Source of the DNA: Scyliorhinus canicula
Lineage: Eukaryota
DNA: 64,000 bases
Reading direction: 5' to 3'
NCBI RefSeq assembly: GCF_902713615.1
Contig: NC_052171.1
Span: 2,728,001-2,792,000 of the forward strand
A model generated the notes under the pieces. That model saw only the letters and a list, made by a program, of their open reading frames with translations. It did no database searches and was not told the origin of the DNA. Within the stretch, counting starts at the first letter, position 1. Each line of letters starts with the position of its first letter. A program made the position numbers and the translations under genes. Positions 3,761 to 60,887 of the stretch are shown here, one piece after another.

Positions 3761-3829
3761 CCCTCAACCTCTTCCTGTCAGCGTAGTAATAATCTCTAAC
3801 CTGTGATCAACTATGTCAAGCATGACCTT

Positions 3830-6012
3830 AACGGGCAACAAAGGAGATTACAATGGGATGAGAGAAGAGCTAGCTAAGGTAGACTGGGAGCAAAGACTTT
3901 ATGGTGAAACAGTTGAGGAACAGTGGAGAACCTTCCAAGCGATTTTTCACAGTGCTCAGCAAAGGTTTATACCAACAAAAAGGAAGGATGGTAGAAAGAG
4001 GGAAAATCGACCGTGGATATCTAAGGAAATAAGGGAGAGTATCAAATTGAAGGAAAAAGCATATAAAGTGGCAAAGATTGGTGGGAGACTAGAGGACTGG
4101 GAAATCTTTAGGGGGCAACAGAAAGCTACTACAAAAGCTATAAAGAAGAGTAAGATAGATTATGAGAGTAAACTTGCTCAGAACATAAAAACAGATAGTA
4201 GAAGTTTCTACAAATATATAAAACAAAAAAGAGTGGCTAAGGTAAATATTGGTCCTTTAGAGGATGAGAAGGGAGATTTAATAATGGGAGACGAGGAAAT
4301 GGCTGAGGAACTGAACAGGTTTTTTGGGTCAGTCTTCACAGTGGAAGACACAAATAACATGCCAGCGACTGATAGAAATGAGGCTATGACAGGTGAGGAC
4401 CTTGAGAGGATTGTTATCACTAAGAAGCTAATGGGGCTAAAGGTAGACAAGTCTCCTAGCCCTGATGGAATGCATCCCAGAGTGCTAAAAGAGATGGCTA
4501 GGGAAAATGCAAATGCATTAGTGATAATTTACCAAAATTCACTAGACGCTGGGGTGGTCCCGGCGGATTGGAAATTAGCAAACGTGACACCACTGTTTAA
4601 AAAAGGAGGTAGGCAGAAAGTGGGTAATTATAGGCCAGTGAGCTTAACTTCGGTAGTAGGGAAGATGCTGGAATCTATCATCAAAGAAGAAATAGCGAGG
4701 CATCTGGATAGACATTGTCCCATTGGGCAGACGCAGCATGAGTTCATAAAGGGCAGGTCGTGCCTAACAAATTTAGTGGAATTTTTTGAGGACATTACCA
4801 GAGTGGTAGATAACGGGGAGCCAATGGATGTGGTATATCTGAATTTCCAGAAAGCCTTTGACAAGGTGCCACACAAAAGGTTGCTGCATAAGATAAAGAT
4901 GCATGGCATTAAGGGTAAAGTAGTAGCATGGATAGAGGATTGGTTAATTAATAGAAAGCAAAGAGTGGGGATTAATGGGTGTTTCTCTGGTTGGCAACCA
5001 GTAGCTAGTGGTGTCCCTCAGGGATCAGTGTTGGGACCACAATTGTTCACAATTTACATAGATGATTTGGAGTTGGGGACCAAGGGCAATGTGTCCAAGT
5101 TTGCAGACGACACTAAGATGAGTGATAAAGCAAAAAGTGCAGAGGATACCGGAAGTCTGCAGAGGGATTTGGATAGGTTAAGTGAATGGGCTAGGGTCTG
5201 GCAGATGGAATACAATGTTGACAAATGTGAGGTTATCAATTTTCGTAGGAATAACAGCAAAAGGGATTATTATTTAAATGATGAAGTATTAAAACATGCT
5301 GCTGTGCAGAGAGACCTGGGTGTGCTCGTGCATGAGTCGCAAAAAGTTGGTTTACAAGTGCAACAGGTGATTAAGAAGGCAAATGGAATTTTGTCCTTCA
5401 TTGCGAGAGGGATGGTGTTTAAGACTAGGGAGGTTATGCTGTAATTGTATAAGGTGTTAGTGAGGCCACACTTGGAGTATTGTGTTCAGTTTTGGTCTCC
5501 TTACTTGAGAAAGGACGTAGGGTGTGCAGAGGAGATTCACTAGGTTAATCCCAGAGCTGAAGGGGTTGGATTATGAGGAGAGGTCGAGTAGACTGGGACT
5601 GTACTCATTTGAATTTAGAAGGATGAGGGGGGATCTTATAGAAACATTTAAAATTATGAAGGGAATAGATAGGATAGATGCGGGCAGGTTGTTTCCACTG
5701 GCGGGTGAAAGCAGACTAGGGGGCATAGCCTCAAAATAAGCGGAAGTAGATTTAGGACTGAGTTTCGGAGGAACTTCTTCACCCAAAGGGTTGTGAATCT
5801 ATGGAATTTCTTGCCCAGTGAAGCAGTTGAGGCTCCTTCATTAAATGTTTTTAAGGTAAAGATAGATAGCTTTTTGTAGAATAAAGGGATTAAGGGTTAT
5901 GGTGTTCGGGCTGGAAAGTGGAGCCGAGTCCACAAAAGATCAGCCATGATCTCATTGAATGGCGGAGCAGGCTCGAGGGGCCATACTCCTGCTCCTAATT
6001 CTTATGTTTATG
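3830..6012 (+). mobile_element. 5'-truncated CR1/HER1-like LINE (RT ORF 3813-5444, premature stop)
   Basis: PSPDGMHPRVLKE, NYRPVSLTSVVGK, QKAFDKVPH, GVPQGSVLGP, SKFADDTK; premature TAA then a frameshift; CR1-type tail. Confidence 0.95.
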
Positions 6013-7836: not shown

Positions 7837-9307
7837 TTTTCCATTTCTGCTGTACCACACCTGTAGAGTGGGCCATGTGCTCCCCATCCCACAATCTATC
7901 AAAAGTTGTGGGTCAGGTGACCTCCATGATACACTTTGGGGTTCTCTAAACCCTGGCCCAGTGTCTGAGGTTTCACAGACAACTCAAAAAGCAACTTCTC
8001 TCCTAAGAAAGATGAATATTTAATTTAAAACCTAACAAAATAGGAAGTGAGTGAAGTTGCAAGTAGCACTGACTCATACCGTGACTGGCCTTCAGCTCAC
8101 AAGTCACAAGGCCTTGTGATTATCATGTGAAAGGTATATTATTTAGACAGTTTCTGACCTTCACATTTATAATGTTCTTCACATTTATTGCTCAGCCAAA
8201 ATACTGAAAAACACTTAGTTAAATTGACAATGATTATGTATTGACAATGTTCTGGATATGGATCAACAGACCCTGGAACTGAGCAGGAACCATTGGTGGT
8301 ATTATTCAAAGGTTTACCTATGCGCCCCAAGATTCAAACTTGTAACTCGGTGCACACATTTATTTCTGGAAGACATTCACTCTCTTTCCAGCATCTTCAA
8401 AGAACTCTGGAAGCAGCATTTCCAATACTTATGAGCTAAATTTTCCAGAGCATGAACAATCATTTCAGAGCTCAGGTAAAAAAAAATCTTTTCATTTAGA
8501 TGTTGGGCCACTACAGCGCACTTATAAAACTTTATGCTAAGAAATAAAATTTAATTGTGTGCAATTCAGATGTTCGATGCACAAATGTTATTTTCCATTC
8601 GACATGGAAAGGCAAAAGCAAATAAGGGCATTACAGTGTCAAACCACATGAAAGATGTGTTAACAACACAGTATGCCTCATCTTTTAAATTAATTCTGGC
8701 AAGAGGCAAAGGCTGTCAGTCATCACCCAAAAGTCTCAATCCAGTTTGTAGCGAGTCGTGGTATTTGGAGTGAATTTGACTAGAGTACAATGCTTTACAC
8801 CGGAGCATCATTCCAAAAAAAAACTATCTTCCCAGCGTTTTCGTTTTGAATTAGTTTATTATATTGTGAGCGATTCACTCAGTAGCCCAGTTACCCAAAA
8901 TATGATTTATCCTTTATTTAGTTGACACCAGCTCGAAACAAGTGAACAAAAATCATTGCAATGTTGGCGAACTTAAAAATAAACGTTTTCGAGTAAAGCA
9001 CTCGGCATCTGCACAAGAGAAAGGACACATTAACCATTTTCATCCCAATATTACTAATGCTTCTGTATCGTCTGATCGGGAAACCACGCAACAACAAAAA
9101 TGGCATTGCAGTTACGGTAGAAGTTTAAAATTCACCTTGTTATGTTCATCGAAAAGGGTCACCCAGTTACTTGAGCGCGCAATGATTTGTTGACCATGGA
9201 GAAAGTCAGAGGGACTGAAAGTGAGCTCCATACCTGTACAGTAGGATTTCAGTCATACTTAAAGGCAAGTAAAGCACAAGTTCAATCACAGGTTAATGGA
9301 GACCTAC

Positions 9308-9421
9308 CATTCCTGCCAGCTCTACGTCCTGATCGTCTGTTAGTATTAGTACGATATTCCGCCTTACACAGTGCCCGAACGAAAAGGACAGGATCAGGAA
9401 CAGAAACGCTGCCAATTTCAT
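9308..9421 (-). CDS. First coding exon of a GNS-like (N-acetylglucosamine-6-sulfatase family) sulfatase; remaining exons not found in the window
   Basis: MKLAAFLFLILSFSFGHCVRRNIVLILTDDQDVELAGM then GTAGGT donor. Hydrophobic signal peptide plus the N-terminal sulfatase motif NIVLILTDDQD. Phase-0 exon end after G-M matches my recollection of GNS exon 1. Orthology not established. Confidence 0.82.
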
Positions 9422-9599
9422 GATATCAGATGGAAGAGGAGCAGCAGCTCGGAGCGCTGGAGGGGGATGGATGTTCAGGAAAGCCTAATGGGTGAACAGC
9501 TCAAAAGGCATCACACACACTGATCTCCAGCAGCTGGACTTTCCTGGCCTTTTAACTTTCTGCTTGGCTGATCGCACAGAGAAGACAGAAGGTACATGT

Positions 9600-14462: not shown

Positions 14463-14653
14463 ATGGCCCTGGTGCCTCGGAAGAAGAAACGGAAAGATCC
14501 CGCTCTTTCTTTGGTTGGAGACAGTCCCGTTGGTGCGGTAAAGTTCGGTGAAGCTGGTATATTTTTGGTGGAGAGGAGGATGGGGTCAAGCAGGAGGAGC
14601 TTCCTCACCGAGCTTGCTCGGAAAAAAGGATTTCGAGTGGAAGAACAGATGAG
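14463..14653 (+). CDS. POLM: POLM exon 1 (NLS + BRCT N-half)
   Basis: MALVPRKKKRK...IFLVERRMGSSRRSFLTELARKKGFRVEEQM; donor GTGAGA at 14654, phase 2. Confidence 0.95.
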
Positions 14654-25770: not shown

Positions 25771-25951
25771 TGAATCTGTTACACATGTTGTGTCTGAGAA
25801 TAACTCTGGAGATGAAGTGTTGGAATTGCTGGAGAAACAGAATGGAATTTGCAGAACTGAATTCAAAGCAGCCTTGGTAGATATCACTTGGTTCACTGAG
25901 AGCATGGGAGCAGGCAAACCCTTGCAACTGGAAAATCGCCATCGGCTTCAG
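25771..25951 (+). CDS. POLM: POLM exon 2 (BRCT C-half)
   Basis: ttttcag acceptor; (S)ESVTHVVSENNSGDEV...LVDITWFTESMGAGKPLQLENRHRLQ; GT donor at 25952. Confidence 0.95.
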
Positions 25952-28698: not shown

Positions 28699-28797
28699 GT
28701 CAAGAGAGTTGCTGCTGCTGGTACCATTGCGGTTCCTGTTTCATCACACGCCTGTCAAAGGAGAACCACACTGAACAATAGGAACAGATTATTTACG
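28699..28797 (+). CDS. POLM: POLM exon 3
   Basis: ttttag acceptor; VKRVAAAGTIAVPVSSHACQRRTTLNNRNRLFT; GTAATA donor. Confidence 0.93.
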
Positions 28798-30121: not shown

Positions 30122-30301
<180 letters not shown>

Positions 30302-30435: not shown

Positions 30436-30507
30436 GAAATCCTTGAAGGTGGAACCTGCAATGAAGTTCAGAATTTGATCCAAAATGAGAGATACCAAAC
30501 ACTAATG
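30436..30507 (+). CDS. POLM: POLM exon 5
   Basis: EILEGGTCNEVQNLIQNERYQTLM; tgcag acceptor, GTAAGC donor. Confidence 0.95.
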
Positions 30508-32698: not shown

Positions 32699-32842
<144 letters not shown>

Positions 32843-35902: not shown

Positions 35903-36035
35903 GCCTGCTCTATTATGAAGACCTTATCCTACCAGTTACAAAGGTGGAGGCGGATTTGATCCAGCAAATTATTGAAGAAGCTGTACACCGATTTCTACCG
36001 TCTGCAGTTATAACATTAACTGGTGGCTTTCGAAG
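35903..36035 (+). CDS. POLM: POLM exon 7
   Basis: (G)LLYYEDLILPVTKVEADLIQQIIEEAVHRFLPSAVITLTGGFR(R); poly-T acag acceptor, GTTAGA donor. Confidence 0.95.
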
Positions 36036-38749: not shown

Positions 38750-39176
<427 letters not shown>

Positions 39177-46487: not shown

Positions 46488-46817
46488 GGTATAATATTGT
46501 ATGATGACACCATGGACAATAGTTATCATAAGTGGAAGAACAAAGAGTCTGAGATATTTGATCGCTTTGCAAAATGCTTTTCGATCTTCAAACTGCAGAA
46601 GATGGTTCACAATCTAGAACCTAGTGGAACATGCAGTCATGGCTCTTTGGCCACAAATGAGACAAGAGGAATTCGACTTGCTGGTCATGCAGGATCTTCT
46701 CAGCATTTAACTGCTTCTGCAGCAAAGGATAAGGACTGGAAGGCTGTGAGAGTGGATCTTGTTGTTGTACCCTTTGGCCAATATGCTTATGCCTTATTAG
46801 GATGGACAGGTTCACGG
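46488..46817 (+). CDS. POLM: POLM exon 9 (Loop1, third catalytic Asp, GW motif)
   Basis: GIILYDD...FDRFAKCFSIFKL...DWKAVRVDLVVVPFGQYAYALLGWTGSR; 330 nt, GTAAGT donor. Confidence 0.96.
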
Positions 46818-47101
46818 GTAAGTTTGATGAAGTGCAACAAGGCACCATGATTCTCAAATTAAAAAAAAAAAATCCAACTTGTATAGCTAATCAATTTGGA
46901 AACTGACAGTGCTGCTGAACATTTTGGATTAATCCACTTTTAAACTTGACAAAGCACTTAATTCAAAAGACTGCCTTTTCGCTTCACAGAGATAGATATT
47001 ATCTATATTTCCAGTATTTTCAATTCCTTTCTGAAAGATGTATTATTGAGGAACCATGTATGATTTTATTTGTACAGTGCCTAATGGATATTATTAGTAT
47101 T

Positions 47102-47394
47102 GGGTGGCATGGAGACACAGTGGTTAGCACTGCTGCCTCACAGCTCCAGGGATCTGGGTTCAATTCCTGTCTTGGGTTACTATCTGTATGGAGTTTGCAC
47201 TTTCTCCCCGTGTCTGAGTGGGTTTCCTCTGGGTTTCTGGTTTCCTCGCACAGTCCAAAGGTGTGCAGTGTCCAAAAGGTTAGGTGGGGTTTCTGGGTAA
47301 TGGGGATAGGGTGAAGGCATGGCCTGAAGTAGAGTGCTCCTTCTAGGGGCCAGTGCAGATCTGATGCGCTGAATGGCCTCCTGCACTGTAAATT
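47102..47394 (+). mobile_element. HE1-like SINE whose tail is the target of the ORF1-only element
   Basis: Head, core, tail GAATGGCCTCCTGCACTGTAAATT. Confidence 0.8.

Positions 47395-60755: not shown

Positions 60756-60887
<132 letters not shown>

Follow-up and report, generated by a model that had tools for sequence, protein, structure and literature searches.

Catshark DNA polymerase mu has a TdT-type lysine at the position of human Arg387

The DNA polymerase mu (Pol mu) of the catshark Scyliorhinus canicula has a lysine, Lys386, at the position of human Arg387, and this is the residue used by TdT. The gene is an orthologous POLM. Its Lys probably replaced an ancestral Arg once chimaeras had split off, in the stem of the elasmobranchs, and all sharks, rays and skates sampled have it. 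It would be convergent with TdT, not a relic of the ancestor and not the result of gene conversion. By analogy with the human R387K enzyme, Lys386 may act as a weaker brake and so raise, to some degree, the addition of untemplated or iterated nucleotides over that of an enzyme with Arg, within an otherwise Pol mu-type enzyme that stands alongside a separate, intact TdT. This explanation as a whole is considered likely, and its part on gene identity and evolution is held with high confidence.

Human Arg387 contacts primer and template, brakes primer translocation and limits untemplated additions and sequence expansions (PMC3592450). In a complex with a double-strand break, a bond forms between its side chain and a template base on the upstream side of the break (PMC7508851). 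The R387K change in human Pol mu is stated in PMC4081086, which cites Andrade et al. 2009, to raise terminal transferase activity up to 100-fold. The restraint by Arg387 and the reported effect of R387K, both brought up in an earlier note on this DNA, are thus found in PMC3592450 and in PMC4081086.

The window analyzed is a stretch of 64,000 nucleotides, positions 2728001-2792000 of scaffold C26 of the catshark assembly (G000). An exon model was built by tblastn of white-shark Pol mu (P0001) onto the window, combined with a splice-site check. The catshark POLM has 11 exons with GT-AG borders throughout, spans 14463-60887 from the ATG at 14463 to the stop at 60885-60887, and encodes a 523-aa product. 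The features are as follows.

14463-14653, + strand: POLM exon 1, with the start codon at 14463 and the beginning of the BRCT region (tblastn of P0001 and splice-site check)
25771-25951, + strand: POLM exon 2 (AG/GT borders)
28699-28797, + strand: POLM exon 3, 99 nt, in frame (tblastn and splice sites; annotated isoforms)
30122-30292, + strand: POLM exon 4 (tblastn and splice sites; an alternative donor ends the exon at 30283)
30436-30507, + strand: POLM exon 5 (tblastn and splice sites)
32699-32819, + strand: POLM exon 6 (tblastn and splice sites)
35903-36035, + strand: POLM exon 7 (tblastn and splice sites)
39071-39173, + strand: POLM exon 8, with GHDVD at 39084-39098 (the His329 equivalent and two catalytic Asp) (splice model)
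46488-46817, + strand: POLM exon 9, with the DRFAKCF beta-strand, Loop1, WKAVRVDL and GWTGSR (AG/GT borders; RNA-type contigs)
46560-46580, + strand: DRFAKCF motif, in which Lys386 is at the position of human Pol mu Arg387 and mouse TdT Lys403 (alignment)
52232-52315, + strand: POLM exon 10, thumb, with the NSH mini-loop at 52286-52294 (splice model; RNA-type contigs)
60801-60887, + strand: POLM exon 11, with the stop TGA at 60885-60887 (tblastn and splice sites)

Direct translation of window positions 46560-46580 (+) reads GAT CGC TTT GCA AAA TGC TTT as DRFAKCF, and the AAA codon at 46572-46574 is Lys386 of the spliced catshark product. Translation and the 11-exon model therefore confirm the motif, codon and residue number first noticed from the letters alone. 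In product numbering GHDVD is 328-332, DRFAKCF 382-388, Lys 386 and NSH 486-488. The GHDVD His and the NSH at 52286-52294 are kept, as the same note had said, and the motifs it used for comparison, DAFERSF in primate and mouse Pol mu and DHFQKCF in TdT, were right. The third catalytic Asp has its codon at 46755-46757, within the RVD at 46749-46757 (WKAVRVDL, exon 9). The GHDVD His, both Asp of that motif and the RVD residues are invariant in a 60-sequence alignment (A1).

Exon 9 alone as query matched white-shark Pol mu with E=5.7e-51, so the exon that carries DRFAKCF is no chance match. A Pfam search with exon 9 alone found no family, which is a length effect of the short query. Exon 10 alone matched the thumb domain PF14791, and the annotated protein P0152 matched PF00533, PF14716, PF10391, PF14792 and PF14791, that is, BRCT plus the Pol X core.

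The catshark POLM is already annotated, and the gene itself is ordinary. The 523-aa model equals the NCBI catshark Pol mu protein (P0152) except for Val-Ile-Glu 212-214, which annotated isoform X2 (520 aa) drops by splicing from an alternative GT donor of exon 4, 9 nt upstream. Two GTAAT donors lie 9 nt apart at the end of this exon (30284-30292), and the downstream one gives the 523-aa form. Annotated isoform X3 (P0156, 490 aa) skips exon 3, which encodes residues 125-157, the stretch that links the BRCT domain to the polymerase core. Lys is present at the site in the NCBI catshark protein and in the sister species S. torazame.

The gene is transcribed and spliced as modelled. RNA-type runs were searched as assembled contigs with coded run metadata, and exon 9 is present in 19 public runs from 7 studies. 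Contigs from four runs of four studies span exon 9 end to end and then join exon 10. In all four the joint from 46816/7 to 52231/2 skips 5414 bases (GT..AG), exactly the modelled junction. A contig of 2257 nt among them has exon 9 at contig positions 1260-1590, as expected for a full-length mRNA. Three of the four differ by one base somewhere within exon 9.

The intron between exons 9 and 10 yielded only repeat-derived contigs. Two stretches of it, 46997-47394 and 51375-52170, are covered in all four runs by very many high-depth, slightly divergent contigs; these are transcribed interspersed repeats outside the POLM mRNA. Long open frames with reverse-transcriptase/endonuclease-like wording occur at 3807-5441 (+), 56236-57072 (-) and 57126-58896 (-), upstream of POLM and within intron 10, and look like remnants of LINE-type retroelements. 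A further open frame at 9296-9484 (-) has a signal-peptide-like start followed by ...NIVLILTDDQD..., which we take to resemble a sulfatase N-terminus. It points away from POLM about 5 kb upstream of the start codon, and as a candidate upstream first exon it had no Pfam or PDB match at E<=0.01.

The place of the gene among its neighbors identifies it. On scaffold C26 a GCK-like single-domain hexokinase lies at 1.980-1.993 Mb, POLD2 (recognized by PF18018 and PF04042) at 2.035-2.041 Mb and POLM at 2.742-2.789 Mb. This neighborhood matches the order in human 7p13, which we take to be GCK-POLD2-POLM. The true TdT motif (…DHFQKCFLILKL…, DHFQKCF) is carried by another gene, on scaffold C16 at 52.23 Mb, and the annotated catshark DNTT protein is P0197. 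Scaffold C16 also holds a hexokinase cluster and a PGAM gene. The human paralogons are DNTT, HK1/HKDC1 and PGAM1 on chromosome 10 and POLM, GCK, POLD2 and PGAM2 on chromosome 7; C16 (5.93, 52.23 and 80.2-80.7 Mb) and C26 (1.98-2.79, 10.11 and 12.55 Mb) mirror them. The pattern is consistent with POLM and DNTT having arisen by whole-genome duplication.

In maximum-likelihood protein trees (LG+C20+F+G4) the window protein falls inside the clade of chondrichthyan Pol mu (100/98), and DNTT forms a clade (100/100) that excludes it. The thumb mini-loop is N/S/T-S-H in elasmobranch Pol mu and DNH in all DNTT. The DNTT-type combination is present only in part in the catshark protein: it has the Lys, but its motif is DRFAKCF and its mini-loop NSH, not DNH. 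DNTT identity was rejected on the POLM-type synteny, the place outside the DNTT clade and the separate DNTT locus. From that locus, the synteny and the NSH mini-loop it follows that the gene is POLM, so the assignment made from the letters alone, Pol mu and not DNTT, stands. Arg is absent at the 387 position of the catshark protein, and on the sequences compared this residue is typical of Pol mu, not family-defining.

The Lys could also have come from DNTT itself, through a DNTT-derived copy mis-assigned as POLM or an exon 9 overwritten by DNTT, either of which would make a true chimera. Exon 9 alone does favor mouse TdT (50 bits) over human Pol mu (33 bits) in a PDB search, and the catalytic core is 49-51% identical to mouse TdT against 46% to human Pol mu. 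This bias reflects the divergence of mammalian Pol mu and vanishes against non-mammalian Pol mu, so TdT orthology was rejected as a reading of these scores. Overall, the catshark protein shares 66% identity with Pol mu of the chimaera and 56-57% with that of gar, bowfin and caecilian; the figures for DNTT and mouse Pol mu are 52-54% and 48%. The part of exon 9 that bears the motif matches catshark DNTT at 39% of its residues and chimaera Pol mu at 47%. Exon by exon, the identity to catshark DNTT was compared with that to chimaera Pol mu and showed no excess toward DNTT in any exon, the maximum being one residue in 27.

At an 80% consensus, DNTT and bony-vertebrate Pol mu can be told apart at only 10 alignment columns. 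In four of these (residues 8, 148, 253 and 386, in four different exons) elasmobranch Pol mu matches DNTT, in five (70, 243, 444, 487 and 517) it matches Pol mu, and at one it is variable. With the TdT-like columns scattered and no exon in excess, the description of the protein as a Pol mu/TdT mosaic in the earlier note was overstated, and "mosaic" is too strong a word. Gene conversion from DNTT into exon 9 was rejected on the same two grounds. Together with the POLM-type synteny and the separate DNTT, these results make a DNTT-derived or overwritten gene highly improbable.

The residue at the Arg387 position follows lineage. Pol mu has Lys in all 15 elasmobranch species sampled (11 sharks and 4 batoids) and Arg in the chimaera Callorhinchus (motif DHFERCF). 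Among bony vertebrates Arg is found in 23 of 27 sampled Pol mu, the exceptions being Ser in salamanders, Thr in one anglerfish and Lys in one marsupial. The Ser and Thr entries (P0187, P0188, P0211 and P0238) are from the salamanders Pleurodeles and Ambystoma and the anglerfish Haplophryne mollis. Lys is present in 17/17 DNTT sequences. All seven deuterostome outgroups (two hagfishes, a lamprey, amphioxus, a starfish, a sea urchin and a crinoid) have Arg, and the protostome homologues (molluscs, a brachiopod, a nemertean and a shrimp) have Lys. By parsimony, at least three changes between Lys and other residues occurred among deuterostomes. The TdT-type Lys is present in the catshark Pol mu, as first noticed, and is not special to it, being shared by the other elasmobranchs sampled, an elephant, a manatee and three marsupials.

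The simplest reading of these distributions is that Arg was ancestral for vertebrates and gave way to Lys twice, in the stem of DNTT and in that of the elasmobranchs. Alternatively, Lys was already present in the gnathostome Pol mu/TdT ancestor, and Arg came later in chimaera and bony-vertebrate Pol mu. The best maximum-likelihood tree lends this some weight by weakly pairing chondrichthyan Pol mu with DNTT, at 85/70 or, with more taxa, 49/7, and the Lys of protostome homologues agrees with it. A single Pol mu clade that includes the chondrichthyans is, however, not rejected by the AU test (dlnL 1.74, p=0.42), and on that species-consistent topology retention takes more changes than convergence. 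Arg in the chimaera and in every deuterostome outgroup indicates that the elasmobranch Lys is derived and convergent with TdT, not ancestral. Retention is judged unlikely on this ground. The suggestion that the protein resembles the Pol mu/TdT ancestor is contradicted by the same Arg residues in hagfish, lamprey, amphioxus, three echinoderms and chimaera.

Derived origin of the Lys leaves its effect to be weighed, and it is quite possible, though short of probable, that Lys386 is a conservative change fixed by drift, with no meaningful effect, and that the rest of the protein sets the balance. A single AGA-to-AAA transition is enough to produce it. The same position has also shifted repeatedly elsewhere. 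A survey of 105 mammalian Pol mu sequences gave Arg in 87, Lys in 6, Met in 4, Ile in 3, Ser in 3 and Gln in 2, with a gap at the site in 3 sequences. Lys is found in African elephant, a manatee, opossum (two isoforms), tammar wallaby and brushtail possum; Met in pig (two entries), meerkat and hyena; Ile in three pinnipeds; Gln in two Myotis bats; and Ser in bilby and two horseshoe-type bats. The non-Arg mammalian entries include P0375, P0381, P0373, P0367, P0351, P0406, P0437 and P0418. The Ser of salamanders and the Thr of the anglerfish add to these shifts. The mammalian Lys proteins are clear Pol mu orthologues with Lys in the Arg387 column, like the catshark protein; they differ in being independent, recent and scattered, whereas the elasmobranch Lys is fixed across a whole subclass.

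Elasmobranch residues 383 and 385 vary, and 386 never reverts in the 15 species, which speaks against drift. The elasmobranch clade is short, however, with a total branch length of about 1.6 changes per average site in the maximum-likelihood tree. Invariance of one site would be expected about one time in five over this length and is weak evidence for selection. Rays read DHFEKCL (P0160-P0163 and P0171-P0174, from sawfish, stingray, manta and electric ray), with Lys together with Leu at the position of human Phe389 and TdT Phe405. This pairing fits a neutral change, since changes at human Pol mu Phe389 abolish terminal transferase even together with R387K, according to PMC4081086. Against a neutral change stands the very large in-vitro effect of the identical substitution in the human enzyme, as given in that paper. 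A caution for the R387K analogy is that the place of Glu386 in other Pol mu is taken by Ala or Thr in sharks.

An AlphaFold2 model of P0152, made from the 60-sequence alignment, has a mean pLDDT of 82.6. The motif is predicted in a confident strand, P0152 residues 382-391, and the block 381-390 has a mean pLDDT of 96. Foldseek matched the model to human Pol mu with TM scores by target of 0.80-0.96 and to mouse TdT with 0.92-0.94. The stretch directly after the motif strand, P0152 395-433, has pLDDT <50 and is Loop1, predicted to be disordered. The part of exon 9 that encodes Loop1 is 46605-46745, 47 residues in catshark. Loop1 is 47-48 residues long in elasmobranchs and 39 in the chimaera, with medians of 28 in bony-vertebrate Pol mu and 23 in DNTT. 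Since Loop1 serves as pseudo-template in untemplated synthesis, how long it is may be as important as Lys386.

Catshark Pol mu shares its domain set (BRCT, 8-kDa/fingers, palm and thumb) with human and mouse Pol mu (PDB 4M04, 4YD1, 2IHM and 9CQ3). It also shares GHDVD with its His, the third catalytic Asp, the GW steric-gate motif and the NSH mini-loop. Human Phe385 and Phe389 are both kept, as Phe384 and Phe388, and the GCK and POLD2 neighborhood is that of the human gene. Unlike these enzymes, it has Lys for the Arg387 brake, Ala for Glu386, the 47-residue, predicted disordered Loop1 in place of about 17 residues in mammalian Pol mu, and a thumb start, TGSR-LFERDLRRYA, nearer to TdT wording. 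Mouse TdT (PDB 1JMS and 4I27) shares with it the Lys (mouse Lys403), the K-C-F-x-I-F-K-L wording, the GHDVD His, a Loop1 and the fold. The catshark protein differs from TdT in having NSH for DNH, a POLM-type neighborhood and a place outside the DNTT clade. The engineered human R387K enzyme (Andrade et al. 2009, cited in both PMC4081086 and PMC3592450) has the identical residue change at the identical structural position in a Pol mu background. It is, however, a single change in a mammalian context, while about half of the positions are different in the shark protein, Loop1 and residue 385 among them.

Elasmobranch Pol mu is a known enzyme in a naturally varied form, altered at a residue whose function has been studied. 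By analogy with the human enzyme, whether exchanging Lys for Arg in the shark protein would have a measurable effect in vitro seems evenly balanced. A real contribution of elasmobranch Pol mu to junctional diversity in vivo, as the earlier note had envisaged for shark antigen receptors, is doubtful. So is a stronger proposal, that the enzyme is naturally un-braked by Lys386, possibly with the long Loop1, and would carry out markedly higher template-independent or iterative synthesis, giving N-like additions at antigen-receptor or repair junctions where TdT is off. If true, elasmobranchs would have taken a second, independent evolutionary route to TdT-like activity. In the searchable literature, no papers on Pol mu in sharks or cartilaginous fish were found that discuss the residue at the 387 position, and no mention was found of an elasmobranch-wide natural Lys, shared with a few mammals.

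Arg387 has been proposed to hold the terminal transferase of Pol mu low so that end joining stays accurate. An activating Lys that a whole vertebrate subclass has kept for several hundred million years, beside an intact TdT, would be a natural experiment on that proposal. The scattered mammals with Lys, elephants among them, would provide further natural experiments on the weight of the brake in vivo. If Lys and Arg make no difference in the shark enzyme, the single-residue brake model would be context-dependent.
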